From: Macrostomum lignano
Lineage: Eukaryota
Assembly (NCBI GenBank): GCA_002269645.1
Contig: NIVC01001208.1
Coordinates: 62,001-126,000, forward strand
DNA: 64,000 nt
Direction: 5' to 3'
Below the pieces are notes generated by a model. That model had not been told where the DNA came from. It was given only the letters and a program-made list of their open reading frames with translations, and searched no databases. Positions 4,598 to 60,821 of the stretch are shown in pieces. Every line of letters begins with the position of its first letter. Position 1 is the stretch's first letter. The position numbers were made by a program, and so were the translations under genes.

Positions 4598-4739
4598 CTC
4601 CAGAGTTTAAGAAATCAATGGGAAACTGTTGACGCAGGCTTCTGATTTCAAAGATCTTGTCTGTGGTTGAAGGCTTCTATTCTGTTTTTGCTCTCCTGCC
4701 ACACTTGCACCTACTACCCCCTGATTGCCTCTGATTGTG

Positions 4740-7575: not shown

Positions 7576-10030
7576 CCCTTAGATGCCGGGTGGCTAGCAG
7601 AGCTGACCATAGCCATAGAATAGAAGGTGATGAGAAAAAAAAATTAGTAGTCTATGGCCAGTGAGGCGCAGAATTGCAGCTCCTTTCCTGCCGAACATGG
7701 TCAGCTGAGCTGACCATGGAATAAATAGCGCACTCACTCAGTCTGTAGCACTCTGTAGCGACCACTAGAGCAACTTTCATGTACTAACAATGGCACAGAA
7801 GAAAGATGCAGTTTATTGTTGAATTAATTTCGAACTATAAAGTTAAAGGGAAAGTTAAAGTTAAAGTTCAAGCAAAAGAAGATATTTGTCCAAAAGCAAC
7901 AAAAAATTTATGATTTTGAGACGCAACTACATGTACGCTTGTATAGTAGCATATAATAATACAGGGAACAATATTGTGGTAGAGTGCCACAGTTGGACAT
8001 TTAATTATTTTTGTCTTAACATAAAGGTAAAAAATTAATAGTCAATGCCGAATACAAACGCGAATTATATAGTATGGCTGGTGAAAGGAGTTCTTTAATT
8101 CAGTAATTCACATGCCACCGTTCAAAGCAGGGACTTGGGCACAGTCCAGGTGCATTCGGACATGCACTGCAGCAGAACACGGTGCGCTTCGCAGTGCCGT
8201 TGCGGTAGCACACGCGGCATCGCTTCACTGGCCTCAGGCACGATTCCCTCGGAGGCAGCTTTGATGGAAAGTGCTGCTGAGCTGTGGCCGCTGCTGGTTG
8301 CCTAGCTGCCGTTCGCTGTCTTCCTGGTCCCGTGGAGTCAACCAGTAGGGTGATACAGCTCTCCAGGAATTTGAAGAACTGCAGCCGGCCACCGTGCTTT
8401 GAGTATACAACCCATGCATTGTGTACAAGCAGCAGGCAGAGATGAAACCCCAACTTATGAAACCACTTGTAGGTTTTGTGGCAGCTGTCGTACGGTTTCA
8501 GCATGGCATCGAGTCGGTCAACGCCTCCCATGCAGCGGTTGTACAGCAGGTTCAAGGCGCTTTTCTGCACTTGCACAGCTTCACCATTCTTGCGAATTCG
8601 GTTCGTCGCTACTTTCTGAGCTGAGCCGTGGGTGTCGATCATGAAGAATGTTTTCAAGCCGCTTTCCTTGCGCTCCAGGATTTTCATGGCCAGCACTGGC
8701 AGCTTCCTCATGAAAACTACGTCATTCAATGGCTCCTGCTGACTGCGCAATGCCAACGGCACTCCACGGTCGGCTCGAACAGTTGCTGTCAGCAGTGTGC
8801 TGCATTCGTACAGAAAAGTCGCAAGCCGTACTGAGGCAAACCACTTGTCGACGAAAAGGTGATAGCCGAAACCGAGCAGGTCCTTGCAAAGGTGCACTAC
8901 GATTTTCTCGCTTAGAGACAGCTGGTCACAACCGAGGTCGTCGCCAAAATGAGAGTTCTCTTCAGCAGTCGAATGTACTAGAAAGTTTACAGGTAGCCAG
9001 ATGCAGACTCACAGGCGCAGTACATTTTAATTCCAACTCTGGCTCTCTTCGATGGGATGTACTGCCTAAACTGAAGGCGCCCCTTGTACAGAATCAGGGA
9101 CTTGTCGACGCTGACCTGCTGCTCCGGCTGGTACACATTCGCGCAGAGCTGCTGAGCCAGACGGAGCAGCGGCCAAATCTTGTGCAGTGGGTCGTTCGAG
9201 GCGGGTGCTCGTGCATCGTAGAAACGAAGGAAGGCCAGCAGCTGCTTGAATCGGTCACAGGTCAAGCCATTGGGCAATTGAAAAAACGGAGTACTGTGAA
9301 TGACACTGGTGCTATCATGCAGTTCCGGCTTCCGTGAGATGCCCATGAACAGGTACATACCCAACAGCTTGGATATCTCACTGCGGTTTGTGTCCTTCCA
9401 TGACTTCAGCAAGCTCGAAACATCTCCATCATGTGTCGCCTGCTCATACTCAGCCCAAGCTTTTGCGTTTGTCCACTCCACGATCTTATCCAGCAGCTCA
9501 TCGGTTAGAAACAGTTGTAGAAAATATTGGATGTCTTCACGGTCTTCGGGAAGGACAAGGCTGGGGTTTACACCCAAAATTCCAGTGAAACTGGGGCCGT
9601 CTTCAACAATGTCTTCGCCTGGCTCCACAAACTGCCAATCGTCTTTTACTTTGCTGATAGTGACCGACTCAGACGACTCGGAGTTCTCCGCTATTCCAGC
9701 GTCACTTTCGGAGTCGGAAGTCAACAGAATATCCATATTTGGATTGATTTGAATTACATGAATAGAATTGTACAGAATTTGGCACAGCCCTTAATATACT
9801 AAAACTGGACTGTCTATGGCCAGTCTTGTACAGTTTTGATAAGCGTGTGTGCAACCCATTCCAAATGTACATTCTCCTTCAACCCTAGATTAGACCAGCG
9901 ATGGCTGGCTTATTGGCAGGAGTGGCAGTGCAATTCAGTTCACTGAAAACTTGAAATAGTCTATGGTCAGCTCTGCTGACCATGCCGGCAGGAACGGAGC
10001 TTTCTATTTAGGAATTCAGGCTTGAAAAGG
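7576..10030 (-). mobile_element. piggyBac-family DNA transposon, decayed
   Basis: Contains a piggyBac transposase. ~40-bp imperfect inverted repeats at 7678-7718 and 9963-10001. The left end starts CCCTTAG. Candidate ATAA TSD at 7572-7575 and 10031-10034; exact ends are uncertain. Confidence 0.7.
8100..9736 (-). pseudogene. piggyBac (PGBD4-like) transposase with one frameshift
   Basis: ORFs 9736-8987 and 8897-8100 join via a -1 nt lesion at ~8988 (SGYL|NFLVHS). Motifs: QVSVDKSLILYKGR (D1), HLFVDKWFASV (D2), YNRCMGGVDRLD (D3), and C-terminal Cys-rich CRVC...CSAC...LC..PCFERWH. Confidence 0.92.
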
Positions 10031-33200: not shown

Positions 33201-36200
33201 CCTCTACTCCCATTGTACACAGGCTCCTAACAAACCTCTACCTCCAATGTACACAGGCTCTTAACCAACATCTACCCCCAATGTACACAGGCTCCGTACA
33301 AACCTCCAGCCCCAATGTACACACACTCATGGTTATGCACGCTCTCACACTTACAATGCGCTCACATAACCAATTTCACAACTCTCATTCCAGACTATCA
33401 GTCCGTTTCTCATCGGACTACGCCAGCACGGAGCTGCAGTCTGATGTCGACCTGCTGTACGAAGCCTCCAACTTTCTGTTGGCCCATCAGATTCCGCTGC
33501 TAATTCACGAGCTGGCCACCCACTCCACCGCCCCAGCTGACGGGCCGGCCCTAGCTCGGGCCTTCCACTCTCACGGCGTCAACCTGCGCTACCTGGGCTT
33601 TTTCATCAACCGTTTGCAGACCGATCTGTCCGCCCAGAAGCAGCAGCAGACTCCTAATAGTCCAGCTGAGTCCGCTGCCGAACGGGCCAGCGTCTATCTG
33701 TTCCCATTGGCTATTCAACAGCTGCTGGTCAGGTCTATCAAACACGTCTGGCGCCGCCTAATGGCCGGTGTTGAAGCCACCAATCTGGCTACCGCGGTGT
33801 GTCACCTGCTCAATTGTATGTTTAGTCAGGCTCCTGTGCCGCAGCCGGCCTTGTTCTCCGATGAATTGTCCAGGGTGAGGCGCAAATCTAAGAAGAAGGC
33901 CTCCCCGTCTGCTAGTAGTCACGGAAATGCCTATCTGTTTGATCAGGTAAAGTACATTAAGTAAAAGTACATGTGAATAAACCCTTCTCAGCAAATCTAC
34001 ATTGGTTAATGGTCACCCCAATGTACACTGGCTATTGGCCAGCCCTCTCCTCCCCCCTCTCAACCCAAGTACACTGACTATCGGCCTGCTCTCTCCTCCC
34101 CCCTCTCACCCCAATGTACACTGACTATCGGCCTGCTCTCTCCTCCCCCCTCTCACCCCAATGTACACTGACTATCGGCCTGCTCTCTCCTCCCCCCTCT
34201 CATCCCAATGTACACTATCGGCCAGCTTTCTCCTTCCCCTCCTCACCCCAATGTACACTGACTATCGGCTAGCTCTCTCCTCCCTCCTCACCCCAATGTA
34301 CACTGACTATCGGCTAGCTCTCTCCTCCCTCCTCACCCCAATGTACACTGACTATCGGCCAGCTCTCTCCTTCCCCCCTCTCACCCAATGTACACTGTCA
34401 ATTGGCCAGCCCTCTTCCCCCCCCCCTCTCCCCCAATGTACACTGACCATCGGACAAGCTTCCTTCATAAAACCACCAATTTTTCTCTGACTGAACCATT
34501 TCAGGGCCTGGCATTCGTTCAACACAACAGCACCAGCTTCTGGGGCTGCATCATTGAGGAGCTCACTAACTACTATCACGTGTCCTCAAACTTTGAATTC
34601 GTCAATAAATCCATTGGCAGCTTGGAAGAATTCGAGACGGCTTGTTCTCGCAGTCTGGCCAGGCTGTACGGACTCAATGCTGACGAGCAGAAGCTGGCCT
34701 CTCTATCCAAGTATTCTCTGCTGCGCTCCGTGTGCGTCACCCTTGGAATTCAGCTGGCTTTGCGCGAGTATTCGTTCGATTCTACCAAGCATTTGACCTT
34801 TCGCGAGGACGACATTGTCTCGCTGTTCCCAGTGGTAAGCGTTTTTTATACTGACAGATTAGGCTTTGTTGTTAAATTCAGATACTATAATTTTGGGATT
34901 AGTGCAGTCTTTGTGATGTAACACTGGGCAGATTAACAATTGAATCTGTCTTTGTTAGTCCATCTCAAACTGGTAGATTAACAATTGAATCAGTCTTTGT
35001 TAATCCATCTCAAACTGGTAGATTAACAATTGAATCAGTCTTTGTTAGTCCATCTCAAACTGGTAGATTAACAATTGAATCAGTCTTTGTTAATCCATCT
35101 AAAACTGGTAGATTAACAATTGAATCAGTCTTGGTTAATCCATCTCAAACTGGTAGATTAACAATTGAATCAGTCTTGGTTAATCCATCTCAAACTGGTA
35201 GATTAACAATTGAATCAGTCTGTTAATCCATCTCAAACTGGTAGATTAACAATTGAATCAGTCTTGGTTAATCCATCTCAAACTGGTAGATTAACAATTG
35301 AATCAGTCTTTGTTAATCCATTTCAAACTGGTAGATTAACAATTGAATCAGTCTTTGTTAATCCATCTGAAACTGGTAGATTAACAATTGAATCAGTCTT
35401 TGTTAATCCATCTCAAACTGGTAGATTAACAATTGAATCAGTCTTGGTTAATCCATCTCAAACTGGTAGATTAACAATTGAATCAGTCTTTGTTAATCCA
35501 TCTCAAACTGGTAGATTAACAATTGAATCAGTCTGTTAATCCATCTCAAACTGGCAGATTAACAATTGAATCAGTCTGTTAATCCATCTCAAACTGGTAG
35601 ATTAACAATTGAATCAGTCTTTGTTAATCCATCTAAAACTGGTAGATTAACAATTGAATCAGTCTTGGTTAATCCATCTCAAACTGGTAGATTAACAATT
35701 GAATCAGTCTTGGTTAATCCATCTCAAACTGGTAGATTAACAATTGAATCAGTCTGTTAATCCATCTCAAACTGGTAGATTAACAATTGAATCAGTCTTG
35801 GTTAATCCATCTCAAACTGGTAGATTAACAATTGAATCAGTCTTTGTTAATCCATCTCAAACTGGTAGATTAACAATTGAATCAGTCTTTGTTAATCCAT
35901 CTAAAACTGGTAGATTAACAATTGAATCAGTCTTGGTTAATCCATCTCAAACTGGTAGATTAACAATTGAATCAGTCTTGGTTAATCCATCTCAAACTGG
36001 TAGATTAACAATTGAATCAGTCTTTGTTAATCAATCTCAAACTGGTAGATTAACAATTGAATCAGTCTTTGTTAATCCATCTAAAACTGGTAGATTAACA
36101 ATTGAATCAGTCTTGGTTAATCCATCTCAAACTGGTAGATTAACAATTGAATCAGTCTTGGTTAATCCATCTCAAACTGGTAGATTAACAATTGAATCAG

Positions 36201-39132
36201 TCTGTTAATCCATCTCAAACTGGTAGATTAACAATTGAATCAGTCTTGGTTAATCCATCTCAAACTGGTAGATTAACAATTGAATCAGTCTTTGTTAATC
36301 CATTTCAAACTGGTAGATTAACAATTGAATCAGTCTTTGTTAATCCATCTAAAACTGGTAGATTAACAATTGAATCAGTCTTTGTTAATCCATCTCAAAC
36401 TGGTAGATTAACAATTGAATCAGTCTTGGTTAATCCATCTCAAACTGGTAGATTAACAATTGAATCAGTCTTTGTTAATCCATCTCAAACTGGTAGATTA
36501 ACAATTGAATCAGTCTTTGTTAGTCCATCTCAAACTGGTAGATTAACAATTGAATCAGTCTTTGTTAATCCATCTCAAACTGGTAGATTAACAATTGAAT
36601 CAGTCTTTGTTAATCCATCTCAAACTGGTAGATTAACAATTGAATCAGTCTGTTAATCCATCTCAAACTGGCAGAATAACAATTGAATCAGTCTTGGTTA
36701 ATCCATCTCAAACTGGTAGATTAACAATTGAATCAGTCTTTGTTAATCCATCTCAAACTGGTAGATTAACAATTGAATCAGTCTTTGTTAATCCATCTAA
36801 AACTGGTAGATTAACAATTGAATCAGTCTTTGTTAATCCATCTCAAACTGGTAGATTAACAATTGAATCAGTCTTGGTTAATCCATCTCAAACTGGTAGA
36901 TTAACAATTGAATCTGTCTTTGTTAGTCCATCTCATACTGGTCGATTGACAATTAAATCAGTCTGTTAATTCATCTCAAACTGGTAGATTAACAATTGAA
37001 TCTGTCTTTGTTAATCCATCTCAAACTGGCAGATTAACAATTGAATCAGTCTTTGTTAATTCATCCAACCGGTGGATCAATGATTTGTGTTGCTAATACA
37101 AATACAGATACCATACAGACACTGGTACATGCATCTGCAGAAACTAATTAGTAGTCCTTGTCAATCCGACTACTTGTGATGCTAAAAGATCTCTTTGCCA
37201 TTGCCGCACCATTACCTAAAAGAAGCCGAACCGCATCCGCAGGTGAAATGCGTCCATCCCAAAGCCTCAGACGCCTACCAGCTGTTCCACATTGGCCAGC
37301 AGAGAATCAGCGCCGGCCAATTAACCGAAGGCCAGGAGCTCATCTGCGAGAGCTTGAACCTGTTGACCTCGGTGTACGGCCCCGTTCACAGCGACACGGC
37401 CAGCTGTCAGCGCCTGCTTGGCCGGCTATCCTACCTATTAGGCGACTACGGCATGGCTCTGCAGCAGCAACAGAAAGCCGTCATTATCAGCGAGAAAGTG
37501 TTCGGCATCGATTCCGCCCAGGCGGCTGCCGACTACGCTCACTTGGGCTTGTACGCCTTCGCCCTTGGCCAGTTCGACAATGCGCTGGCTTTGATGTATC
37601 GCTGCCGCTACCTGTCAGTACTGTGCCACGGCGAGCTGCACCCGGAGACGCCAACTATCGATTCTAATATCGGCCTGATGCTGCACGCTGTAGAAGATTT
37701 AGATCGCTCGTTGCAGTATCTAACTAGCGCCCTGCGTATTAATACTCTTCTATACGGTCCGAGGAGTCTGAAATCGGCGCTTAGTCATCATCTGATTGCT
37801 CGCACGCACAGCTGCAAAGCCGATTTCAGGGCCGCTCTGCAGGCCGAGAAGGTTAGATCGATTGATACTTTTTTTGAGTAGAGGGGAAGATAGGCAATAG
37901 GGAAGTGGGGAAAATAGAGGAACGGAGTGGTGGGGAAGATAGAGGATCAGAGCAGTGGGGATGATAGAGAATCAGAGAAGTGGGGATGATAGAGGATCAG
38001 AGTGGTGGGGAAGATAAAGGTTCAGAGCAGTGGGGATGATAGAGGATCAGAGAAGTGGGGAAGATAGAGGATCAGAGAAGTGGGGAAGATAGAGGATCAG
38101 AGAAGTGGGGATGATAGAGGATCAGAGCAGTGGGGAAGATAGAGGATCAGAGTGGTGGGGAAGATAGAGGATCAGAGTGGTGGGGAAGATAGAGGATCAG
38201 AGTGGTGGGGAAGATAAAGGATCAGAGCAGTGGGGATGATAGAGGATCAGAGAAGTGGGGAAGATAGAGGATCAGAGAAGTGGGGAAGATAGAGGATCAG
38301 AGCAGTGGGGAAGATAGAGGATCAGAGAAGTGGGGAAGATAGAGGATCAGAGTGGTGGGGAAGATAGAGGATTAGAGCAGTGGGGAAGATAGAGGATCAG
38401 AGAAGTGGGGAAGATTGAGATCAGAGTGGTGGGGAAGATAAAGGATTAGAGTGGTGGGGAAGATGGAGAATCAGAGCAGTGGGATGATAAAAGATCAGAG
38501 CAGTCGGAGAAAATAGAATCAAAACAGAAAGGACAATGTAGGGGAGAGAAGGGAAGATAGGGTATCAGATGCAAAGGAAAGATTCATGTAAAAAACAGCA
38601 TATATCAGTGAGTGTTTCTGATGCCTTAGAGACTATTAGTATTATCTGATATATTAGCATGCGTTGCAAAAGCGCTGTCGCCCCCCTCCAAACACCCGCT
38701 GAGCAGGAGTGCTACACAATCTATCGCGAGCGCCTTGGCGAGGAGAACGAGCGCACCAAAGAATCGTTCGACTGCATCACCCACCTGACCCGGCAGGCTG
38801 TCGTGTTTGAGAAGCGCGTCCGCGATTTGCAAGCCGGCAAAAAGGCCGGCGGCCTCTGCCCGTTGCAGATCCAGACGCCAAATCTGAGCAATTTATTGGA
38901 GACTCTCAACCTAGTTAATGGCATATTCTTCATCCAGTTGAGCTCGTGCGATCTCGACAAAATCCGCGCCCACTTGGCCTCCATCGCCGATTTGCAGCAG
39001 CCCGAAGGTCAGGCGGCTGTGGCCGCCGCTGCTGACGATTCGTCTGCCACCGCTGCCGCCGCCTCCGCCGCTGCTGTTGAAGGTGAAGGTGAAGACAATT
39101 CAGCGGCTCTTAAACAGGAGGTTCTGGACTGA
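27241..39132 (+). CDS. CLUH: Clustered mitochondria protein homolog (CLUH/clueless), 9 coding exons, ~1358 aa
   Basis: Exons 27241-27712, 28533-29056, 30071-30383, 31523-32015, 32500-32856, 33394-33946, 34505-34834, 37243-37851 and 38707-39132 total 4077 nt, with all GT-AG introns in phase. CLUH motifs: [72 protein letters not shown], and the TPR region to [22 protein letters not shown]. Confidence 0.96.
28064..28480. repeat. CLUH intron 1 minisatellite, 32-bp unit (TAGCCACAGCCACATAATAGCTCATAGCCTAA)
   Basis: About 13 units. Confidence 0.9.
29165..29705. repeat. CLUH intron 2 minisatellite, 22-23 bp unit (CCCTGAAGATTTCCCCTGAACAG)
   Basis: About 23 units. Confidence 0.93.
30590..30840. repeat. 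CLUH intron 3 minisatellite, 35-bp unit (GTCTATGGGAATATGGGATTTTTATTTGTACCTGA)
   Basis: About 7 units. Confidence 0.92.
32041..32402. repeat. CLUH intron 4 minisatellite, ~25-bp unit (GTGTAAGAGTGCCCTTCTCCCCCAG)
   Basis: About 14 units. Confidence 0.93.
33005..33325. repeat. CLUH intron 5 minisatellite, 34-bp unit (CAATGTACACAGGCTCTTAACCAACCTCTACCCC)
   Basis: About 9 units. Confidence 0.92.
34015..34450. repeat. CLUH intron 6 minisatellite, ~47-bp unit (CAATGTACACTGACTATCGGCCTGCTCTCTCCTCCCCCCTCTCACCC)
   Basis: About 9-10 units. Confidence 0.92.
34925..37065. repeat. CLUH intron 7 minisatellite, 45-bp unit with 43-bp variants
   Basis: About 47 units of TTAATCCATCTCAAACTGGTAGATTAACAATTGAATCAGTCTTTG. 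Confidence 0.97.
37880..38520. repeat. CLUH intron 8 minisatellite, 25-bp unit (AGTGGGGAAGATAGAGGATCAGAGA)
   Basis: About 25 units. Confidence 0.93.
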
Positions 39133-42225: not shown

Positions 42226-45200
42226 TTAGTAAGCTGCAGTTGAACTCACAGCCGGGCTGGTTGATGAAGCTAACTTAAAAAGTTTATCGATTTGATCGAA
42301 CAGCTGACCAGCCGAGGGTCTTTCCGAGCTCCAGCAGCGGTTGCGCAATTCCTGCCTGAAATATATTTCAGATTAGTATTTACGGTGGTAAGTTATTTGA
42401 AACGATTCTCCATGTATTAAGGATTTGAGTATCAATGTGCTTTGAGGCGTGTTTATGAAGATGATTGAAGGCGATTATCAAAGTAACTAGGGGTGCATGG
42501 TTATGATTATTAACGTGGTTAGATGTCATTAAATGTGATTGGCAATGCTATTTGGTTTGATTACTTCAACCGAGGTAGTTATCAAAGTAATTATAGATGA
42601 TGATCAAGGCAATTACTAAAGTGATTAGAGGGAATTGCTGATAGAAAATTACATTACCATCAGGAGCCACCGGGGGGGGGGCAGGGGGACATGCCCCCCC
42701 CCCAGTAAAAGCTATGCGGGGACATGCCAATGCTTTTTCTCCTCCACCCCACCTTGTGACCCGTTGTGGTATCGAAAATATTTCTTCAGGCGCCAAAATA
42801 TAGCGCCGCCGTCGGCGCTAAAATGAGTGCCTGCGGCTCCAAAATGAGTGCCTGCGGCGCTAAATGAGTGCCTGCGGCGCTAAACTGAGTGCCTGCGGCG
42901 CTAAACTGAGTGCCTGCGCGCTAAATGAGTGCCTGCGGCGCTAAACTGAGTGCCTGCCTGCGGCGCTAAATGAGTGCCTGCGGCGCTAAACTGAGTGCCT
43001 GCGGCGCTAAACTGAGTGCCTGCCTGCGGCGCTAAATGAGTGCCTGCGGCGCTAAACTGAGTGCCTGCCTGCGGCGCTAAATGAGTGCCTGCGGCGCTAA
43101 ACTGAGTGCCTGCGGCGCCAAAATGAGTGCCTGTGGCGCTAAATGAGTGCCTGCGGCGCTAAAACGAGTGCCTGCGGCGCTGAATGAGTGCCTGCGGCGC
43201 TAAAATGAGTGTCTGCGGCGCTAAAATGAGTGTCTGCGGCGCTAAAATGAGTGCCTGCAGCGCCAAAATAAGCGCTGACAACACCGATTCTCAAAATACT
43301 GGCATGTAGGAATTTAGTCATGTACGTGTTAAATTCTTGGCTTTGTCCCCCCACCATAAAATCCATGGCGACGCCCCTTATTACTATTAGAACAAAAACT
43401 TTCACACGCACAACAGTCACTTACAGCTGCCACAGCTGACTAGTTGACTTGTACTGACAGGCAAACTTTTCCGAATCTGCGGTCAGTGCGCTAACAAGAA
43501 ACGACTGGAGCTCGGCGGCAGATTTAGAAGCTGTTAAGCTGGTTAAATGATTCACCAACTGTTCGTCTGTGTAGCCTGACAGCGGCTGGCTGGCCATGGT
43601 GAACACTTCAAGGAGTACTACGCCCATGGACCTTTGTGGATGGCGGGTGAACGGCGGTTACAATGCGATTCTGTGCAATGAGAGGGCGATTCTGTGTAAT
43701 TTGAGGGCGATTCTCTGTGTAATGAGAGGGAGATTCTCTGTGTAATTCGAGGGCAATTCTTTGTGGAATTAGAGGGCGATTCTCTGTGTAATGAGAGGGC
43801 GATTTTAGACGACAGCAAGAGCGAATTTTCAGACGACTCTTTAGGCTCCTATTGTAATGTAAGGATAAAGATCATGTTAACTTTCGTAAAAGCACTCACT
43901 CACCACACATTAGTCTCGAGTGAGTGATCTTTAACTTTCAGACTGCCGTTGGACTCCTCTGTGTTGAAATTGAAATTCTCTGGAGCCAGCCAGCGCAACG
44001 GAATCAGCTGACCTTCCAGCAATACGTAATCATCCTGAGTGCGGATGGAAACTTTGCATTATTTTGTAGCCTTCAATCAATTACAGGTGGGAGATGGGAC
44101 TGATGGACAGGTGGGAGATGGAACTGATAGACAGGTGGGAGATGGAACAGATAGACAGGTGGGAGATGGGACTGATTGACAGGTGGGAGATGGAACTGAT
44201 AGACAGGTGGGAGATGGAACTGATGGACAGGTAGGAGACGAAACTGATAGACAGGTAGGAGATGGAACTGATGGACAGGTAGGAGATGGAACTGATAGAC
44301 AGGTAGGATATGGAACTGATGGACAGGTAGGAGATGGAACTGATGGACAGGTGGGAGATGAAACTGATGGACAGGTGGGAGATGGAATAGATAGACAGGT
44401 GGGAGATGGAATAGATAGACAGGTGGGAGATGGAATAGATAGACAGGTGGGAGATGGAATAGATAGACAGGTGGGAGATGGAATAGATAGACAGGTGGGA
44501 GATGGAATAGATAGACAGGTGGGCGATGGAACAGATAGACAGGTGGGAGATGGAATAGATAGACAGGTGGGAGATGGAACAGATAGACAGGTGGGAGATG
44601 GAACAGATAGACAGGTGGGAGATGGGACTGATGGTCAGGTGGGAGATGGGACTGATGGACAGATGGGAGATGGAACTGATGGACAGGTGGGAGATGGAAT
44701 AGATAGACAGGTGGGAGATGGAACAGATAGACAGGTGGGAGATGGAACAGATAGACAGGTGGGAGATGGGACTGATGGTCAGGTGGGAGATGGGACTGAT
44801 GGACAGATGGGAGATGGAACTGATGGACAGGTGGGAGATGGAACAGATAGACAGGTGGGAGATGGAACAGATAGACAGGTGGGAGATGGGACTGATGGTC
44901 AGGTGGGAGATGGGACTGATGGACAGGTGGGAGATGGGACTGATAGACAGGTGGGAGATGGAACAGATGGACAGGTGGGAGATGGGACTGATGGACAGGT
45001 GGGAGATGGAATAGATAGACAGGTGGGAGATGGGACTGATAGACAGGTGGGAGATGGGACTGATGGTCAGGTGGGAGATGGGACTGATGGACAGGTGGGA
45101 GATGGGACTGATAGACAGGTGGGAGACGGGACTAATAAACAGGTGACCACATAGACCAGCACTCACCCTGTGCTCCACCTCTGTACAACCGTAGTCGCCA

Positions 45201-48200
45201 ATCTTCACAACCAGATTGTCAGTCAATCGACAGTTCCTGGCGCCAATATCCTGATAGATGAATCCTTTCTCGTTGAGAACTGCCAGGCCTCGGCAGGCTT
45301 GGGAAGCAAATCGGAGAGCGAGCGAGTCCTCCAAACACCTGTGACCGCCGTCCGTGATGAGCGAGCGGAGGTACGACTTCAGGTCCGTCTGGAAATGGTA
45401 GATGGAACAAATTGTTCATCAGCGAATAGTTTTCTCTACTTACTACTAACGAGTGAGTTATAAGTAGCAGGCTTGCAAATAGTAAGTAAATTAGTTTGAA
45501 AATGTTATTTCAACTCGATGAAATTCACTCCCCTGTGAGACAGTTGGATAAGTAGGAGATAGGACTGATGAATATACAGGTAGGAGATGAGACTGATGGA
45601 CAGGTAGGGGATCGGAGATGGGACTGATGGACCTGTGGCAGATGGGACTGTTGAACAGGTAGGAGATGGGACTGATGGATAGATATAAGATGGGACTGAT
45701 GGACATGTAGGAGATAAGACTGATGGACAGGTAGGAGATGGGACTGATGGATAGATATAAGATGGGACTGATGGATAGATATAAGATGGGACTGATGGAC
45801 ATGTAGGAGATGGGACTGATGGACATGTAGGAGATGGGACTGATGGACAGGTGGGAGATGGAACTGTAGAATCGATAAAAAAAGTGGATCATGCCATCAT
45901 CATGGTGATAAGATTGACATTTCTCACCAGGGTAGTCTCCATGACAGCCAGGTAGGGCTCCGCTGTGGTGCACAGGCCCATCAGTTTTAGCACGCACGGA
46001 TCAACGCACTCTTTATAAGCTTGAATATCCGCCAGGAAGTGCAGCCGGTCTTTCTCGGCCAGTTCAACCGAGGCTTCGTTGGACAGCAGGCGAACGATCA
46101 CTCGCGATCGGAGAGTTTCGCCGTACCGGTTGCACTCGGCATCGATGACGGGGCCGAACCAGGCCTGGCCCAGCTCGCTTAGAAAGAACAGGTGCTTCCG
46201 ATCCATGTGAAGCAGGTTCGGGACTGCTTGGGGACAAGGGTGATGGACACGACTGTCTGGCAAATGATGGACACGACTGTCTAACAGCTGATGGACAGGA
46301 CTGTCTGACAGCTGATGGACACGACTGTCTGACAACTGATGGACAGGACTGACTGACAGCTGGACACGACTGTCAACTGATGGACAAACAACTGATGGAC
46401 ACGACTGTCTAACAGCTGATGGACACGACTGTCTAACAGCTGATGGACAGGTCTGTCTAACAGCTGATGTACACGACTGTCTGACAGCTGATGGACACGA
46501 CTGTCTAACAGCTGATGGACACGACTGTCTAACAACTGATGGACACGACTGTCTGACAGCTGATGGACAGGACTGTCTGACAGCTGATGGACACGACTGT
46601 CTGACAACTGATGGACAGGACTGACTGACAGCTGGACACGACTGTCAACTGATGGACAAACAACTGATGGACACGACTGTCTAACAGCTGATGGACACGA
46701 CTGTCTAACAGCTGATGGACAGGTCTGTCTAACAGCTGATGGACACGACTGTCTAACAGCTGATGGACACGACTGTCTAACAACTGATGGACACGACTGT
46801 CTGACAGCTGATGGACACGACTGTCTGACAGCTGATGGACACGACTGTATGACAACTGATGGACACGACTGTCTAACAGCTGATGGACAGGTCTGTCTGA
46901 CAGCTGATGGACAGGTCTGTCTAACAACTGATGGACACGACTGTCTGACAGCTGATGGACACGACTGTCTGACAACTGATGGACACGACTGTCTAACAGC
47001 TGATGGACACGACTGTCTGACAGCTGATGGACACGACTGTCTAACAGGTGATGGACACGACTGTCTAACAGCTGATGGACAGGTCTGTCTAACAGCTGAT
47101 GGACACGACTGTCTGACAGGTGATGGACACGACTGTCTAACAGGTGATGGACACGACTGTCTAACAGGTGATGGACACGACTGTCTAACAGGTGATGGAC
47201 ACGACTGTCTAACAGGTGATAAACACGACTGTCTAACAGCTGATGGACAGGTCTGTCTAACAGCTGATGGACACGACTGTCTGACAGGTGATAGACACGA
47301 CTATCTAACAGGTGATGGACACGACTGTCTAACAGGTGATGGACACGACTGTCTGACAGGTGATGGACACGACTGTCTAACAGGTGATGGACACGACTGT
47401 CTAACAGGTGATGGACACGACTGTCTGACAGCTGATGGACACGACTGTCTAACAGCTGATGGACACGACTGTCTAACAGGTGATGGACACGACTGTCTAA
47501 CAGGTGATGGACACGGCTGTCTGACAAAGACGATGGATAAGACTATCTAAAGGGTGTGGACAAATGTTACAAAAATCTAATAGGCCCATTGCTAGAAGCC
47601 ATGAACCATAAAGAACTCACGCAGAATAACACCAGCAGACTTTGGCACCAATTCGAAACTCAATCGCATTCTTGGTCGCAGGAAATTCTCCGGCTTCTGC
47701 TGTACAATCGCGGCCAGATCATGGGAAGAACCAGCAGTTGATCGAATTCCAGTCGCCTCATTGTTCATCGATATTGAAGCATCATTTGGCGGTGGCAGCA
47801 TGCCTAATTCAGTCATTGTGCGATTGTCAGCCTGTGAAGCTGTGATATTTGCTGTAGACTGCGACTCTGTGATGCTCTGATTCCAATCTCCATCTAGCAC
47901 AAAGTTCTGTGAAATTGAAAAACAAGTTATAGAACTTGAGCTATGCTGTGAAACATAAATTATTTAAATAGAATCTGCTTACCTTATATAAGTCAGTATT
48001 TTTACAGCAAGATGTGCATTGAAACACCAGGACTCCAATTGCAAAAACACAGGCAGTAGCCAAAATTGCAAATAAAATGGTGGATGACAATGGTAGGCTA
48101 GAAATATCTTATAGCATTTTGTAGCAATTGATTTTACTAAGTCTGGAACTAATAATATAGTGGTACAAATATCTATGCAAATATATTTCTTAGTTTTAAA

Positions 48201-51581: not shown

Positions 51582-54296
51582 AAGACTTGAAGTAGCTAAG
51601 CAACAGGCCTACTAGACTATAATAAGCAATAAGGGTGAGCCTAATACTAATTGGTACTGGTATCCTTCTTTTTTAATTGAACTATCACCTATGCCTATGC
51701 TATGGGTATGGCTATGTTTGGGTAGCTATTATATTAGCTATAGGCCTAGTTTATAGTAGAGCTACTATAGTTAGGCTACACAACTTGTCAACAATGCTAT
51801 AACAGTCTAAACTAGCTACCCTGTAGATCTATATTTTGATACATTTTAGCTATTTTCTTTTTTATACAATGCTCAAATCATTAAAATTGTAAACATGCAA
51901 AGGCAATGAAAATAGGTCCATGATTAAAATTCTATTGAATATATTGTGTTCATATCAATAGTCTATATAGTATAGACTATATAATCATTAGGTCCAGTAT
52001 AGCTATTTAAGGAAAATTAATTAATTAATTGACAAGGATAGATAGCTATATAGCTCTAGTATCATAGTAGTATTGATCTATAGTTTGTTTATTTGATTTC
52101 ATTGGTATAGTAAAAAAGCTTAAATATTTATTCATCTTTCATGTACTTCTTGACACATTAATTCTCGCTCAAGATCATCCAAAAAGGTTTAAAAGTTTGC
52201 AACTCCAAGTTTTGACCATGTCATTCTCTGGTTCCTGAACAATTCCTGAAAATTGCTGAATGAACTTTTGACCGCCTTGCTGAAGAAGGTTATAGTACTG
52301 AGACAATTTTTGAGAGACTTGATAATGAAATATCTGTTGATTTGGATGTACAAACCCTTAAATATGTGAAAATTTTGCAAATATGTGAAAAGCTCATTCT
52401 CCAAAAATGTTGCACTTTCTGTCTTATGGAGGGAGCTGCTGCTTAATCTAATAGCCACATTTTTGAGCTGCTCACTTCTAAGTTTAGAATTTTATCAAGC
52501 AGTCCTTCCGCCTGCTGGCAATTTCTATCGCTTACGCAATAGCACAAAACAATCGTCTCTTTTATGCTACTTCTTATCCGAAACTGCCCCCTACTCAGTC
52601 ATGTATTGTGCAGTTGAAAGATGGTGAAAGATGAAAGTTCATTTTCTGAATGGCACCAATATTTTAGCTGATGTAATTTTTTTAGATGTCTGCAATTTAC
52701 AAGACTTTTTGAATCCATCCAATGTACCTATTGCTGCTGATATATTATGTTTAGCAAATACTTTCTTGTTTATCTGCCGCCCATCTTCTAACACCTGCAC
52801 TATTCCAGTGGGATGTAATTTTCTGCATCAGTTTGTTTCAGTCAATAATATTTTTCCCGATAAGGACTTGTGTCTCATTATACTGGATTCTTGCTGCCAT
52901 GAATATGGCTAAATTTGGGATGACTTGAAGCTGAGTAAGAACTGTTAAAACTGAGTAAGCACTACTAAGAATTGTATCTATTGCGGATCGTTTTCAAAAT
53001 ATAGATCACTTGAACCAATCGCCATACAATAATTCGCTTATTGCTTGCTAGTTGTGTATCTTGTTTGATTTTTTGTTGACTGTTGTATAGTTGGAAAAAG
53101 GTAAAAATACGAGAAAACATTTTGTGTGTACTCAAATTTCAATTTTAATGACTTTTAACGTTTCACTTTCTGTGCAGCTTTAATTTGAATGTTATATAAA
53201 TATAATAATGGTATGCAATCGTGCATATTGTACTAATTGTACATTATAAACTGCCCAATAGTAATCGAGTCTGGTTAGAAAAACATCCTCTCATGTGTTT
53301 ATCGTCTTTACATTAATTTTCTAATCTAAAAATTCAGAACATCGGCAAAAGCCATACATGCTACTCAGAGTAAACTGTGTGTCCATCCACCGAAAGTAAT
53401 TGCAATCGGATTGCGCCAGAAATTGCATAAATTACAATTCAATTGGTCTAAATTGCAAAACTTACAATCCGCGTGTGCAAAATTGCTAAAATTGCAATTT
53501 CGATTGTAATCAGCTTATCCAAAATTGCAATTGAGGTGCACGCAATTGGCAATTATTGTACAATTTCGGCAAGTAGATTGCAATTTTCGACAATTTCTTG
53601 TAATTTCGGTCGACTAGGGAAACTTCCAGAAATGATGAGAAATCCCGGCCTCCTGGCTCTCTTATTTCTCTCCCGCTCTTCCGATAACATGTACTTTGTG
53701 ATCAAATACTTTGTGATCGAAAATCATGAACAGAAATAAATTCTTGTTTCAAAAATGCACATGCAGTTTATGCAAATGTTTGCAGTCATTATAAAAACCT
53801 TAACTAATGCAGAGCTTGCTCATAAAAATTGAGGGGCGCCATAGTGCATTAATTCTCACCCAATCCCGACCATATCTCAGCGGTTGAACTGTCTACGAGT
53901 ATAAAAACCACACGAAACCAGTTTGTGTGCATGAATTTTTAGAGGGACGAGTTGTAGTCGAAATTTGCACATTTACGAGCAACATTTAAACGTTTCTTTC
54001 CGCTAATCACACCAGAATGTGCATGAAGCGCGCCACCGCGTACTCCTACGCCAGAGAACTCAGCTTGACTCAGATCTTCGGAGCAGTATCCGCTTTGCTC
54101 AGACTTTTAGCTCGTATAAATACTTCAAGCCACAACTCAGAACACTGCAGCTATAGCTGATCGGTTGTACAGATAAAGTATACAAACAGCTACATTTACA
54201 TACATAGAAGCTGTCCACCACAACACAAAATAAATACTGCAGGTGCTAAATTAAAAAAGACATCGAAACCTAGCCACTGAAAAATCCATTCAGATC

Positions 54297-57200
54297 ATGT
54301 TTTCCAATCTACTGTCAGCATTTTTCCAATCAATCGCTGTTGTCTTCATGCAGGCTTCTTCAATTCAGCAGTCAACTGATGAACCGACTGACCAAGAGTT
54401 CATGACGGCGATAGCCGCTGGTAATCTGGCCTTAATTCGCCACTGTTTGAAAAAGCGATCAATAAGTAGTTTTGATAGATTGATCAGTTTCCATGGAAAT
54501 CAGTTGTCGCCACTACATTTGGCGTGCGCCACTGAAAACAGCAAAGTTGTTGAGCAGTTGACTAGTCTCGGCTTTGACGGGAACATTCAGGATCGAAGCA
54601 ATGGCGCCGCGCCGCTGCACATCGCCTGTCAGTCCGGTCGGCCGGCTTCCGTTGAGCCACTCATTAAAGCGCAGGCCGATGTCAATCTGACTGACAGACA
54701 CGGCGCCTCGCCTCTGTTCATCGCTGCCCAGGATGGTCATCATCAGATTGTCAGCCTGCTGATCCGGGCCAAAGCTGACGTGAATTTGGCCGCTAAGAAT
54801 GGCATGACATCGCTGCATATTGCGTCTCAAGAAGGCAATTATCAGGTTGTCGAGCTGCTTATTCAAGCCTTGGCCAATGTTAATATTCGAGATAGAGAAG
54901 GTGCCACACCTCTATACCTTGCTTCGCAGAATGATCACATAAGGGTAGTTCGTCTGTTAATTAAAGCTGGAGCAATGCTGAACAGCCAGACTAACAAGAA
55001 GATGTCGCCATTGCACGTTGCATCGCAGAATGGTCACCAGAGAATTGTGCAGGCCCTTGTTAATGCCGGTGCCAATGTCAACAGCCAGCAATCTGACGGT
55101 GCGACGCCTCTGTACTTCGCATCGCAGAAAGGTCACTATGCTGTGGCTCTAATCCTTGTCAAAGCTCATGCAGATGTAAATCTTCCAATTCATTACGGCG
55201 CCATTCCGCTTCACGTAGCCCTAGTCCAAGGTCACAATGACGTCATCAAGTTGCTAATCGAAGCTCGCTCTGATGTTGACTATCCTATGACGAACGGACA
55301 AACCCCGCTGTACATCGCAGCCGATCATGGCAATCGACAGACTGTTCAGTGCCTCATCAACGCCCAGGCCGACGTGAATTGTCGGCGAAGGGACGGAGCC
55401 ACGCCGCTGTGCATCGCTGCTCAGAACGGTCACAGTGCGGTCGTGCAGTCCTTAATCGGAGCTCAAGCCGATGTTGACATTCTAGGATTGAATGAAATGT
55501 CGCCTTTGTACCTCGCGGCGCAAGCTGGTCGGGATCAGGTGGTCAAGCTGCTTGTCGATGCTGGAGCAGCAGTCAATCTGCAACAGAAAGATGGCGCTAC
55601 GCCGATGTACATAGCCAGTCAGCAAGGTCATCACCGAGTAGTTGAGCTGCTCATCCGAGCTCAAGCCGACGTTAATCTGTCGCGAATCGATGGAGCAACT
55701 CCAGTGTGCATTGCTGCTCACTTTGGTCGGGATAAAGTGATGGAGTTGCTTATTGAGGCTGGAGCTAACGTAGCAGATGCTGTTTATGATGGTAAGACAC
55801 CAATACAGATTGCTGCCGAAGAAGGACATTCGAGGGTGTACGCGGTGTTAAAGAGTGCAATGCTGAAGATGGACTTGTCGAAGGAAGAGGACGATACGAT
55901 GAACAACTGCCAAGATCCTGGAGCACCTGAAGACAATGAAAATTGGGATTATGATGAGTGCGTACATTTACAACTGAGTATTTTGTCACTTAGTCCCTGA
56001 CTCTTGCATTAATTAGTTACCGGGCTCGACTCCCGGTGCTGCTTTATTAACCTGTACATGTAGTTCACTGTGGAATGTTGACCCAGGGCTTCGAGCTCAC
56101 AATTGCCAACCCCAAGGCACAGATAGTTCCTAGAGAGTTATTTAGTTAGTTAGTTAGTTGAGTTTAACTTCTCCTATTCAGACACGAACTGAGCCAGCAG
56201 CTGCATCAGGCTCTGACTCGATCCGGCTTCACGGACTCCCGGGCCGCTATGCAAAGCTCACTGGCCGACGCCCTGCAGAGCATTCTCCGTCTGAGATTGA
56301 ATCACAATGAAATCCACGTAGTTGGCAGCTACTCAGAGGGTTGGGGCAACAATTTGACAACGTTGGACGGCAGGACAGATTTCGAGTCGGACATTGACGT
56401 GATGCGGCTGCTGCACGGCAGACTGTACCACCTGAGAAGCGCGTGCCAGTGCGTAGGCAAGGACGTCGAGACCGTGGACTATGACAATGGACACATAGCG
56501 TGCAAAGGATTTGGTAATTTGACTTGGGCTTGAGGAAATGTCTGCATTCTTTTGCATTCTTGTACGTTTAAAATTAACTGTAGGCCTGATCCTTACATTG
56601 ATGAAACTCTGAATCTGAAGCAGTTAGAAGCAGAATTTACAAAAACCATTTAATTTTCACGCAAGACAACGATCGGAAAACGCCCAGTAATCTTTCTGAT
56701 AATTCGATTTCTGAATGCCACTTAATTCTCACCACAATCAACCGCATGTCCCGGCAGCGTCAACTCCGGCCAGCGCGTCTGACGGCTCACACGCGAAGCC
56801 GGCTGTCGATCTGGTGGACGCCTGTCGTCTCTGCTGTTACCCTCTCATCGCCCCGCTACAGCCAGACAGAATCGCCAAGTCCAACATTACCGAGTCGGTG
56901 CTTCGGTCGCTCAATCGCGAACTGACGTCGCCTTCGTCGCCCTGTCACGTGGTGCACGCAGCTCCTCCCGGACAGGGGGGAGAGCAACTCAGAGTGAGCA
57001 CAACCTTCTTGGAGAGGCGTCTTTTGCGGAGCCTTAGCACCCTTCAGGGCCAGCTTTTCGTTGCATTGAAGTATCTAGTTAAGAAGGTCATCTGTCACGA
57101 CGACGGCTTCAAAGTGAAAGGTTTAAAAGCCTATCATGCCAAGACCATCACGTTCCAGATGCTGGAAGCGACTCCCGCTGATCAATGGAAGCCGGAAAAC

Positions 57201-58205
57201 CTGGTAGGCCTCATCAGGCAGTCGCTGCAGAGGCTGCTGGACAACTTGGAGAGAGCCTGCCACTCGGACAGCGCTGAGGGGCCAATCATGAGTCACTTCT
57301 TTCTGTGCGACACGGCCCTCTATCTGAAAGGCGTGGACCGCAGTTCGTCTGAGAAAATGAAGCTGGTCCTAACAAACGCTGCTACTGGGTTGAGAAAGAC
57401 CATCAATCAGCTTCCTAGGCTACTGTTAAAGTTCAAAGCCAATCTGAGAGAGGTTACAAACTCTGGCAGGTTCTACTTTCATCCGTTTCTCATCCTGCCG
57501 AATTTGCAAGCTAATCCGGTTAGCAGCACAGCTGCAAGTCTCGAATATCACGAGATCTTTGATGTAGTGAGGGAGTCTCTGGTTCAACTGGCTGAAGAAG
57601 ATTGCAGCGCTACTGCGCAGGAGAATCTGGCTAAGCTCATTGCCAGATTGCCTAACTGTGCTCAGACTGCTCGAGAGTCGCTAAAGGTGCTGGCTTGTCT
57701 TAAGTTTGGCTATCGAGATGCCGCTGTCAGGACGCTGGCCTATTGTGACAGGCACGAGGTGAGCCGGGGAATTCCCTGGTCAGCTAATCGATCCAGGGCA
57801 GAGGCTACTGCCGAACTTGTGATGCAATTTATAAAGGCCAACGACTCCGCCTGGAAGTTTTGCTTTAAGTTTGCCAAGCGTCCAGAATTGAGATTTCTAT
57901 CGCCGACTCTGGTGCACTGTTTCCCGCAAGTTCTGGAGAATGACGCCAGCTGGTACTTTGTCAATTTTGACGCTCTAATGCAGTGTCTGCGGCTTGAAAT
58001 TACGCCTAACGACCTGAGGGCTCAACTTTGGGTTTGGGACGTCGCTAAACGAGAGGATGCCGACGTGCTTGAGCTGATGACGGCCGCTTCTTACTGCAAC
58101 GACAAGAAGCTGATGGACAGATTTATTGAGCAAATTCGACGGATCAGCTTCATTCCCGACTGGCTGAGAGAAAATCTGAAGTTGAAGCTTCGAGATGCCT
58201 GGTGA
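54297..58205 (+). CDS. Ankyrin-repeat / Mab-21 (cGAS-like receptor, cGLR) nucleotidyltransferase fusion, 3 exons, ~1146 aa
   Basis: Exons 54297-55957, 56182-56513 and 56758-58205 total 3441 nt. Introns: GA|GTGCGT..TATTCAG|A (phase 2) and G|GTAATT..CGGCAG|CG (phase 1). ~14 ANK repeats (TPLxxAxxxGHxxxVxxLIxAxADVN). NTase motif VVGSYSEG-x14-SDIDVM, third Asp in PAVDLVDA, and Mab-21 C-lobe motifs LRVSTTFLERRLL, FVALKYL, KAYHAKT, W, MSHFFL. The start may lie further upstream (CAG acceptor-like site at 54291-54293). Confidence 0.88.
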
Positions 58206-60821
58206 TAGGGGGTGGGTGGATGCAACACTTAACTTTTTATTTCCTTTGAGGGTATTAGTAGCTTTATTAAGCATATTTCAAAAAAATTGATCTTTCTTAG
58301 TTGCTGGTTCATTGGGGACTATTATTCGCGCGACTGAATACGTTTACACCAGCATTAAATATATACTCTTATCTCAACCTGTCTAAAATCTTAAATATGG
58401 GTTGCTTTGAAAGTTGTTAATTTAGCTATGCATCAGATATTATTTTATTGCTTTTTTAATTTATATTTTCTGTACTCAACTTTAACGTCGCTATTGGTAC
58501 CTAAAAATCCCGAATCCCTAATCCCTAATTTAATTAATCCCTAATTCTTTAATCCCTATTTAAGAGTAAACAAATGTCTTTATTTTACCTGAACTACCTG
58601 ATGTCTTTAAACTCCCTTGAGCCACAGTATTTTAGCTATTTCTCAATGACTCCTGACATATCTCAGCAATTCCTCCCGAAAGCCTTGACATCTCAACCAG
58701 AAAAAGGATTCCAGCATTTTACGAACGCTCACTATTGAAACCAAAATTCGTGTTTACGTTACTGCTACTTGATACGTTTGTTAGCCGTTTGAAGTCTCGT
58801 GTTCCAACCAAGGACTACTTAAGAACCACTTAAGTGTTCTTAAGTAGTCCTTGGTTCCAACCACGTCAACTTGCTGCTCTAGTAAGGCCATCAGGTTTTT
58901 GTCATTGTGAGACAATACGAGCGTAATTTGGTTTTGACCACCGCCAAGAACAACATCTCCCTCAGTCAGACGGCCGTCTTCTACATCCAGCATCCTCGCG
59001 GACATCTCCTCGCAGCATCCTCGCGTACATCAAGAACCAGCTATAGACCGCGTCAGAGGTAGACAACAAACTGCTGACGTTGCGGGATGGCCACGCAGTC
59101 GGGCGGCTGCCATGATGCGTTGTCGGCGTCGGCAGGAAAGCTTGGACTGCACCGCGGAGCTGGGCGAGGAACTTGTCGTGGCCGTCGTCAGGCTGGCCAG
59201 GCTGCAGGCACTCGCCAGGCACACAGAGGGGCGCTCCGTAGACCACAGCCTGGGCCTCATTCTTAAGCCCGAACTGCATTCGCAGGAACTCGAAGAGGCC
59301 GAACGGGGTGATGACGGCTGTCTTGGGCACATCGGCGGCGGCCATCGGCACCTGGTGGTAGCCACGCACCAGGTCAATCTTCGAGAAAACCGAGCACCCG
59401 GCCAGGCGCGCCGAGAAATCTTGGATGTGCGGCACCATGTAGCGGTCGGGGCACGGTGGCGTCGTTGAGTCGCTGAAAGTCGCCACCCGCCAGAGGCCTT
59501 GGGCACTATGTGCAGCGGCGAGGACCAAGGGCTGTGGGAGCGGCGCACAATGCCGAGCTGTTCCAAGAGCCGGAACTCCTCCTTGGCCACCGCCAGCTTG
59601 TCCGGTGGCAGGCGGCGCGGGTGGGCGTGAACCGGCGGGCCGTTGGTCGGGATGTGGTGTTCCACACCGTGGCGAGGCTCTGCTATCTGAAAACTGGGCT
59701 CAGTGAGGGTCGGGAATTCTGCCAGCAGCTGTCTGTACGGATCCGCAGCGGCGGCTGCGGTGAGCTGCAGTCCGGGCCCTGTGCTGCCTAGCAGATGCAC
59801 GCTGGCAAGCGATCGAGCGTCCATGAAGCCGCACCAGCGGCAGGTCCACAAGCAGACCGTGGTGGCCAAGGAAGTCAGCGCCGATGAGCGGGCGGGAGAC
59901 CTCGGCTAGGATGAACGGCCAGGAGCAGCGCCGGATTCCCAGGTCGAGCGTGAGCTGTCGCGTGCTGAAGGTGCGGATGGCGCTGCCGCTGCCGTTAGCC
60001 GCGTAGAGCGGCGGACCAGTGAGTGCAGGCGAGCATCGGTGCCGGTGACGGGTAAAATGCTCACCTCGGCGCCAGTGTCGACCAGGAAACGCCGGCCCGA
60101 CTGGACGTCCGAAAAGAGGAGCAGGCTACTGTTGCTGCCGGCCGTCGAGCCGTTCACCGACGGCCGGCCTGGCCGTTTCCCTGGAAACTGCACGGAGGCT
60201 CACAGCGACGGGCCTTCGCCCCGAAACGGCGGTGGAAATGGCAGAGGCCGTCTTCGGAGCGTTGCCGCGGCTGCCGGTCCTGGTAGGGCTTGCGGTTGCT
60301 CTCGCTGAGGCCCGCGGTGGCCACCGACTGGGCAGGCTGCTGGGCTGCGGGAACCACCGGCAGCTGCGCTGCTGCGCGTGGCTCGCTGAAGTCAGCGGTC
60401 GCCATGGCCATCCGAACATCGGCAGGCAGTTGCTGGCGGAACAACTCCTCGAAGATGAGGCAAGGCCGATGGTCTCCTAGCAAGGCCAGCATCTCATCCA
60501 TTTAGTTCCGAAGGCAGTCGATCACCAAGTCCGGAGAGATTGAGCAGACGGCTGGCCCTCTGTTGCCCGGGTCTGGCCGGGTCTGCCGAGCAACCGTGTT
60601 TTCAGCGCGTTATACCACTCTTATGTCGGCGGTGCCTCTAGTACGTCGAGAAGCCGTTCGGCTGTCTGCTGGTCGAGCGCGGTGATGACACATGGCAATA
60701 CTTGGTGTTATACAGACTTCGGCCTGTATAAACCAGGCCCTTAGGCTGGGAAGCCCAAAAGGTTGGCAGTTTGAGTGCGACGGCGGACTAAGTCATGATA
60801 ATGACCTCAGCTACGGCTGGG

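Follow-up and report, generated by a model that had tools for sequence, protein, structure and literature searches.

The stretch of DNA analysed here (the window) comprises 64,000 nucleotides of the flatworm Macrostomum lignano (GenBank assembly GCA_002269645.1, contig NIVC01001208.1, positions 62,001 to 126,000 of the forward strand; coordinates below are window positions). At 54297-58205 on the + strand it carries the gene BOX15_Mlig021960g1, which is intact and already annotated, and which encodes ankyrin (ANK) repeats, a predicted cGAS-like nucleotidyltransferase (NTase) domain and a long C-terminal tail. Three open reading frames (ORFs) are listed separately on this strand, at 54297..56000, 56249..56533 and 56715..58205, and an earlier note on this DNA had proposed that they form one protein of about 1146 residues with matching intron phases. 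This is indeed the case: joining 54297-55957, 56182-56513 and 56758-58205 gives a 3441-nt in-frame coding sequence (CDS) of 1146 amino acids plus the TGA stop codon. Both introns have GT..AG ends (TGA/gtgcgt...ttcag/ACA and TTG/gtaatt...ggcag/CGT), a pyrimidine-rich stretch precedes the first acceptor, and since each of the three exons is 2 mod 3 long, the intron phases match. The spliced product is 100% identical over 1146/1146 residues to GenBank entry PAA70758.1, the product of BOX15_Mlig021960g1. No assembly entry matched the exon-3 ORF product exactly, because the spliced product alone is on record.

The first intron (224 bp, 55958..56181) interrupts the protein at ...DYDE/HELSQQ, a junction that is the same in PAA70758.1 and whose position is kept in a second copy of the gene described below. 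The second intron (244 bp, 56514..56757) gives the junction ...ACKGF/ASTPAS, in agreement with the paralogues and with PAA70758.1, and the paralogues align colinearly with the window protein across both splice junctions. The BOX15 annotation derives from RNA-seq data, which were assembled under genome guidance with StringTie/TACO and combined with a de novo assembly (PMC5730564), and the placement of the ANK and Mab-21 parts on one mRNA is thus transcript-derived. Transcript data across the junctions 55957/56182 and 56513/56758 had been named as one way to check the gene, and separate transcripts for the two parts as what would overturn it; the RNA-seq-guided model carries the identical splice and joins both parts in one CDS. 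No second copy of the gene was found within the window by tblastn. Immediately upstream, an AG acceptor (ttcag) lies 3 nt 5' of the start ATG (54288-54299), which would be consistent with spliced-leader trans-splicing, a process that acts on 38.8% of the genes assembled in the M. lignano transcriptome (PMC5730564).

Exon 1 (54297..55957) holds the start codon, an N-terminal cap (residues 35-68), 14 ANK repeats (residues 69-531; 54501-55889) and an acidic linker. The repeats follow an exact 33-residue register, the tandem arrangement that defines ankyrin-repeat proteins, and Pfam recognizes them with Ank (E = 8.5e-94, 13 stretches) and Ank_2 (E = 7.6e-105). The count of about 14 repeats in a single exon given in the earlier note is therefore exact. 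The ANK region is acidic (isoelectric point 5.9) whereas the remainder of the protein is basic (8.5). At the other end, the second part of exon 3 (57510..58205) encodes a family-specific tail of about 230 amino acids (residues ~916-1146) followed by the TGA stop, again as anticipated. This tail extends past the part that aligns with cGAS and is predicted to be mainly helical with two small sheets; in the AlphaFold2 (AF2) model most of its 10-residue blocks have predicted local distance difference test (pLDDT) scores of 92-98, and the final block alone falls to ~71. An alignment shows the tail to be conserved throughout the paralogue family, and it has no match in Pfam, in the PDB or among viral structures (BFVD).

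Between the array and the tail, exon 2 (56182..56513) opens the cGAS-like domain with its N-terminal spine helix, the beta1-GS motif, an insert of about 11 residues, the beta2 strand DID and the residues H637, C642, C644 and H658, while the first part of exon 3 (56758..57509) supplies the remainder of the domain, including D682, R743-V-S745, Y790-H-A-K793 and the Mab-21_C helical lobe. For the analyses of this domain we have used the C-part, that is, the 592 residues left after the 554 N-terminal residues that bear the ANK repeats. A single-sequence search of this non-ANK part against PDB sequences gave no match, and a family profile was needed. Exhaustive profile searching of 1.84 billion representatives retrieved 657 proteins, of which 86 had E<1e-30. 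Ten distant matches (E ~1e-10 to 1e-13) were scanned against Pfam: Mab-21_C (PF20266) passes its cutoff in every one of them, and the Mab-21 NTase domain (PF03281) reaches its own in eight, stays just under it in one and has no match in the last; at least two of the ten carry extra C-terminal domains, one a tetratricopeptide repeat (TPR) and one trypsin-like. Against PDB sequences, the family profile matched mouse cGAS with E=2e-6, and every significant match was a cGAS. Comparison of the family with mouse cGAS by hhalign gave a probability of 94.7 and paired WRLSFS with LRVSTT and SYHVKT with AYHAKT; this alignment covered the C-lobe alone, and the motif equivalences of the N-lobe come from a MAFFT alignment with canonical Mab-21 proteins.

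The predicted structure agrees with this assignment. An AF2 model of the C-part based on a 74-sequence alignment reached a mean pLDDT of 95.4 and a predicted template modelling (TM) score of 0.94. When it was compared with the PDB by foldseek, the top match was Cv-cGLR1 (8gjw; E=6.7e-8, 355 aligned columns, probability 1.00), a cGAS-like receptor (cGLR) of the oyster Crassostrea virginica, followed by human, mouse and pig cGAS with target-normalised TM scores of 0.52-0.59 and also with a probability of 1.00. MAB21L1 and MiD49/51 appeared further down, OASL and OAS2 were far weaker, and a search of viral structures (BFVD) gave no match for the core, as for the tail. From the model, it is clear that the fold of the C-part is cGAS-like, with the bilobal Mab-21/cGAS NTase architecture expected of a cGLR. 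The Mab-21 fold proposed earlier thus stands, with a cGLR as the best structural match and the family profile linking the protein to Mab-21 proteins and cGAS; a fold unlike that of cGAS would have spoken against the proposal, and the confident model matches Cv-cGLR1 and then cGAS. A previous AF2 model, made from a 13-sequence alignment, had a poor NTase core (pLDDT <50 at residues 35-198 of the C-part) and was replaced; foldseek matches obtained with it were meaningless except for a faint one to MiD49.

In their study of animal cGLRs, Li et al. 2023 defined the active site as hGS followed by [DE]h[DE]h[X50-90]h[DE]h (PMC9980059), and all of its elements can be located in the window protein. 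The beta1-GS corresponds to G602-S603 (56324-56329, exon 2), the beta2 strand to D624-I-D626 (56390-56398, exon 2) and the third predicted catalytic aspartate to D682 within VDLV (V681-D682-L; 56808-56810, exon 3). The spacer of 55 residues between D626 and D682 fits the [X50-90] range, which points to a complete cGLR active site. In the AF2 model, D624 and D626 open a long beta strand and D682 sits on another strand. Further along exon 3, the equivalents of WRxSF and SYHxK are R743-V-S745 (56991-56999) and Y790-H-A-K793 (57132-57143). The MAFFT alignment pairs VVGSYSEG with hhGSxxEG of canonical Mab-21 proteins, SDIDV with SD[IV]D, AVDLVDACRLC with xxDhVxAhRC, LRVSTTFLER with WR[IL]SFSxxER and AYHAKT with SYHxKT. 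Conservation over the 74 sequences, canonical Mab-21 proteins included, reaches 90% or more for ten residues (G602, S603, D624, D626, D682, R743, S745, E750, Y790 and K793). Among those family representatives that cover the position in question, GS is kept in 79/80, D624 in 83/83, D626 in 79/83 and D682 in 83/89. The GS, DID and third aspartate reported from the sequence alone are therefore all at their places and near-invariant.

The earlier note had also read the deviating motifs LRVST, HAAPPG and KAYH as a hint at an unusual product or substrate. The motifs are present as described; the hint at an unusual product is weak, because the conserved residues of WR-x-S and S-Y-H-x-K are all retained, the changes W to L and F to T (WRxSF) and S to A (SYH) only flanking the conserved R743, S745, Y790, H791 and K793. 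The one substantive motif difference is HVVHAAPPG, which replaces the 'VPK' strand of cGAS family-wide. The family insert of about 11 residues (WGNNLTTLDGR..., in 56330-56389), which follows the GS loop and precedes the DxD strand, is missing from most of the canonical Mab-21/cGLR proteins aligned, and the model shows it as an ordered loop (pLDDT ~94-97). A set of conserved histidines and cysteines, H637 (81/86), C642 (73/86), C644 (73/84), H658 (72/82), C690 (87/89), C727 (82/96) and H728 (92/97), occupies the stretch of the N-lobe that separates the DxD strand from the strand of the third aspartate, the H637-H658 cluster lying at 56429-56494 in exon 2 and C690, C727 and H728 in exon 3. These residues could form a candidate metal site, positioned apart from the zinc thumb of cGAS. 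The zinc thumb itself, H(X5)CC(X6)C, is absent: in the hhalign comparison, the family is gapped where mouse cGAS has IEKTCCESSGAKCCRKEC. The window protein should thus not be filed as a cGAS orthologue.

Two more copies of the gene, g2 (PAA61028.1) and g3 (PAA59037.1), are present on other contigs; both have the same length as the window gene (g1) and are 98% identical to it. The hidden tetraploidy of M. lignano and the redundancy of its assembly (PMC5730564 for the latter) account for these near-identical copies. Copy g2 is found in NIVC01002078.1:82610-94536 of GCA_002269645.1, at 4001-7927 of that stretch, and has the same exon-intron structure as g1. Over 3441 nt of exon, g1 and g2 differ by 42 substitutions without a single indel; in the introns, 13 substitutions and 18 gap columns fall within 486 columns. 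With 20 synonymous and 22 non-synonymous changes, dN/dS is 0.33 and the synonymous excess is significant (binomial p=5e-4 vs neutrality), demonstrating purifying selection between these recent copies. Split by segment, the dN/dS values of 0.19 (cGLR core), 0.35 (ANK) and ~1 (tail) are imprecise, resting on 9-18 changes each; for the tail, the 7 non-synonymous and 2 synonymous changes are too few for interpretation.

Beyond these copies, the gene has many relatives. All of 39 close relatives are from M. lignano save one metagenome fragment, and many are annotated with ANK and Mab-21_C. Every named family member is from M. lignano, and the paralogue count suggested in the earlier note comes to at least 86 representatives at E<1e-30, each a cluster at 50% identity. 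Across the family, the ANK array always lies N-terminal of the cGLR domain and contains 3-16 repeats. The lineage-specific expansion is clear, and is typical of immune receptors; judged from these sequences, the gene belongs to an extensive paralogue family that is restricted to Macrostomum and diversifies fast, in line with expectation for innate-immune pattern-recognition receptors. One paralogue, PAA93319.1 (BOX15_Mlig026614g1, 2111 aa), has the order ANK, cGLR domain, ANK and caspase, the last (Peptidase_C14, residues 1896-2107, E=2.8e-27) keeping its SHG His motif and QSCRQ Cys motif.

Part of this family has been catalogued before. Li et al. 2023 (bioRxiv 10.1101/2023.02.22.529553, PMC9980059) defined the cGLRs and named the ANK-cGLR fusion as an architecture class, and the covered portion of their Table S2 lists six M. 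lignano proteins with N-terminal Ank_2 (PAA67649.1, PAA58690.1, PAA68676.1, PAA86972.1, PAA45980.1 and PAA68216.1), which bears out the remark in the earlier note that accessory-domain cGLRs occur in invertebrates and that the architecture class may not be new. The accessions of PAA70758.1 and its copies are not among the covered portions of Tables S1, S2 and S4, and the literature yielded no dedicated study of a Macrostomum cGLR, STING or Mab-21 protein. Five M. lignano paralogues (PAA86972.1, PAA45980.1, PAA57558.1, PAA93208.1 and PAA68676.1; Table S3, entries 89-93) were cloned for the 140-enzyme screen of that study (PMC9980059), and these are 30-39% identical to the window protein over the cGLR domain. 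The screened constructs start with the NTase domain or shortly before it (PMC9980059); for the three with Ank_2 coordinates given in the covered portions of Tables S2/S3, the start lies after the ANK region, which was hence omitted. The ligands used were poly I:C and ISD45 double-stranded DNA (dsDNA) (PMC9980059). The gene is therefore real but not new, being an annotated paralogue in a family already catalogued.

The M. lignano ANK-cGLRs of Li et al. are also the systems closest to the window protein: species, family and module order (N-terminal Ank_2, cGLR domain, tail) are the same, the motif block GSxxEGWG...SDIDh...D...LRVST...YHAKT is common to both, and the 14-repeat array of the window protein is among the longest in the family. 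Cv-cGLR1, a dsDNA-activated 2'3'-cUA synthase (Li et al., PMC9980059), shares the cGLR fold and the complete active site at 17% identity; however, it is a stand-alone domain of 346 residues, to which the window protein adds the 554 N-terminal residues, the tail and the insert. Vertebrate cGAS (6ct9, 7uux) has the same bilobal Mab-21 NTase fold (13-18% identity) but, unlike the window protein, possesses the zinc thumb and a disordered basic N-terminus, and lacks the ANK array and the tail. The coral fusions (Li et al. 2023, Fig. 4C) belong to the same architecture class, a cGLR core with a putative protein-interaction module; they come from another phylum, probably represent an independent fusion, and are uncharacterised as well. 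Finally, MAB21L1 (5eom) and MiD49/MiD51 (4woy, 5wp9) have the same fold and are significant structural matches with lower TM scores (0.44-0.49).

Based on the sequence motifs, the model and analogy with characterized cGLRs, we infer that the window protein is probably a ligand-gated cGLR enzyme, in which the triad would make a nucleotide second messenger and the ANK array and/or the tail would regulate the enzyme or recognise the ligand. It would be a cytosolic protein of three modules, namely a 14-repeat ANK solenoid, a cGLR NTase domain with a complete Mg-binding triad and the family-specific helical tail. At rest the NTase would be off, ligand binding would switch it on, and the active enzyme would join two nucleoside triphosphates to give a cyclic dinucleotide, or a nucleotide signal of a related kind, for a downstream receptor to read. 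It is plausible that the ligand acts not via a cGAS-type nucleic-acid groove and zinc-thumb DNA platform but via the ANK array, the tail or both. The role that the earlier note had assigned to the ANK solenoid, a protein sensor or an autoinhibitory module, is plausible.

Several observations weigh against this interpretation. The window protein alone scores 21.5 bits with PF20266, under the gathering cutoff of 24.1, and has no match to PF03281. The Mab-21 profile check proposed earlier thus gave a split answer, negative for the single sequence and positive for the distant family matches (PF20266 in 10/10), and several paralogues also pass PF20266; the sub-cutoff score is, judging from these relatives, a sensitivity failure of one divergent sequence and no argument against homology. 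The triad call rests on alignment columns and on strand positions in the model. In Table S3, where active enzymes are flagged in the Note column, none of the five M. lignano rows has such a label, and the main text of Li et al. makes no mention of Macrostomum (PMC9980059); activity has thus been reported for no family member. For parasitic flatworms, the rows of Table S5 covered give 0 cGLR and 0 STING (PMC9980059), the covered part of this table having no entry for M. lignano; in the window, none of the 10 large ORFs scanned matched STING, in a survey that included no search aimed at it. Moreover, the NTase site of the caspase-fused PAA93319.1 is degenerate, with D-I-N for D-x-D and Thr for the third Asp, so that catalysis does not appear to be required of every family member. 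This paralogue suggests that some members may signal by direct effector activation instead of a nucleotide, if it is not a merged gene model.

Some of these points would also suit an NTase of other chemistry, which could make linear 2'-5'/3'-5' oligonucleotides as OAS does, or nucleotidylate a protein or RNA recruited by ANK. The triad is generic to pol-beta-type NTases, and a faint Pfam match of the window protein to an MTPAP-like palm (E=0.024), together with the weak OASL/OAS2 structural matches, reveals the shared core. The family-wide HVVHAAPPG, the insert between GS and DxD, and the ANK-less paralogues without a labelled product in a screen oriented towards cyclic dinucleotides also go in this direction. 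We nevertheless regard this chemistry as unlikely, since the closest structural and sequence neighbours are cGLRs and cGAS rather than OAS or poly(A) polymerases, and R743, S745, Y790, H791 and K793, which align with WR-x-S and S-Y-H-x-K of cGAS, are conserved. Less likely again is a non-enzymatic scaffold or adaptor like MAB21L1 or MiD49/51, whose Mab-21-fold domain would bind a nucleotide or partner while ANK mediates assembly. Such a role would agree with the significant structural matches to MAB21L1 and MiD49, with the paralogues lacking reported activity, and with PAA93319.1, whose loss of two of the three acidic residues indicates that the fold is usable without catalysis in this family. 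However, the near-invariance of GS, D-x-D and D in about 80 representatives that are otherwise 30-60% identical would be difficult to account for if catalysis were not under selection, and the Mab21L1/2/3 genes have no predicted functional active site according to Li et al. (PMC9980059), whereas the triad of the window protein is intact and conserved.

That the gene model itself is an artefact, with ANK and Mab-21 encoded by separate neighbouring genes or by a decaying duplicate, is very improbable. M. lignano does have polycistronic precursor transcripts and a highly redundant assembly (PMC5730564), and a retrotransposon reverse transcriptase fragment is found 750 bp downstream; yet the ORF is continuous across two canonical introns, the identical 1146-aa CDS is present in the transcript-based annotation alongside two copies of the same length that are 98% identical, the order ANK then cGLR recurs in dozens of paralogues, and the comparison of g1 with g2 gave no exon indels and a dN/dS of 0.33. 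A more far-reaching version of the ligand-gated enzyme, which we put forward tentatively and consider rather doubtful as a whole, is that the Macrostomum ANK-cGLR radiation amounts to NLR-like surveillance in a phylum that may otherwise have mostly lost its cGLRs. Its variable ANK arrays (3-16 repeats) would sense proteins, the tail would oligomerise or autoinhibit, and the output would be a nucleotide signal or a direct effector. The targets of ANK may then be pathogen or self proteins rather than nucleic acids, and the nucleotide signal may be read by a non-canonical receptor, with the direct-effector route suggested by PAA93319.1. Under such surveillance, the ANK-less constructs would have gone unlabelled with dsDNA or double-stranded RNA (dsRNA) because their sensing module had been removed.

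Downstream of the gene, the reverse transcriptase fragment lies in overlapping, frame-broken ORFs on the - strand (58962-59869; RVT_1 E=2.5e-5), a decayed retroelement about 750 bp past the stop codon. At 8100-9736, also on the - strand, two adjoining ORFs encode a piggyBac-type DDE transposase (DDE_Tnp_1_7 E=1e-35 and 1e-18) plus a zinc finger, with a frame break dividing the transposase. A CLU/eIF3 p135-like gene (eIF3_p135 E=1.5e-23) has exons at 33281-37881 on the + strand, with TPRs (TPR_12 E=7e-24) after the p135-like part; it is an ordinary housekeeping-type neighbour. On the - strand, the ORF at 44081-45334 encodes a short piece of a protein kinase (PK_Tyr_Ser-Thr E=2.5e-8); around it, at 44-46 kb, GC and AT skew are strong (GC skew 0.48).

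Taken by itself, this single gene adds little, being one annotated paralogue, present in three near-identical copies, of a family listed in the literature. The family bears on a wider question, since the activators of most animal cGLRs remain to be found: in the study of Li et al., ligands (dsDNA or dsRNA) were assigned to only 9 of 15 active enzymes and to none of the accessory-domain fusions (PMC9980059). The caspase-fused paralogue with its apparently dead NTase site hints at direct effector coupling. For the whole family, the broader question is what is sensed by ANK-cGLRs and which molecule of a flatworm picks up their signal. M. lignano is transparent and transgenesis is possible (PMC5730564), and these properties, combined with dozens of ANK-cGLR genes, would make it a practical system for asking whether ANK arrays sense ligands.

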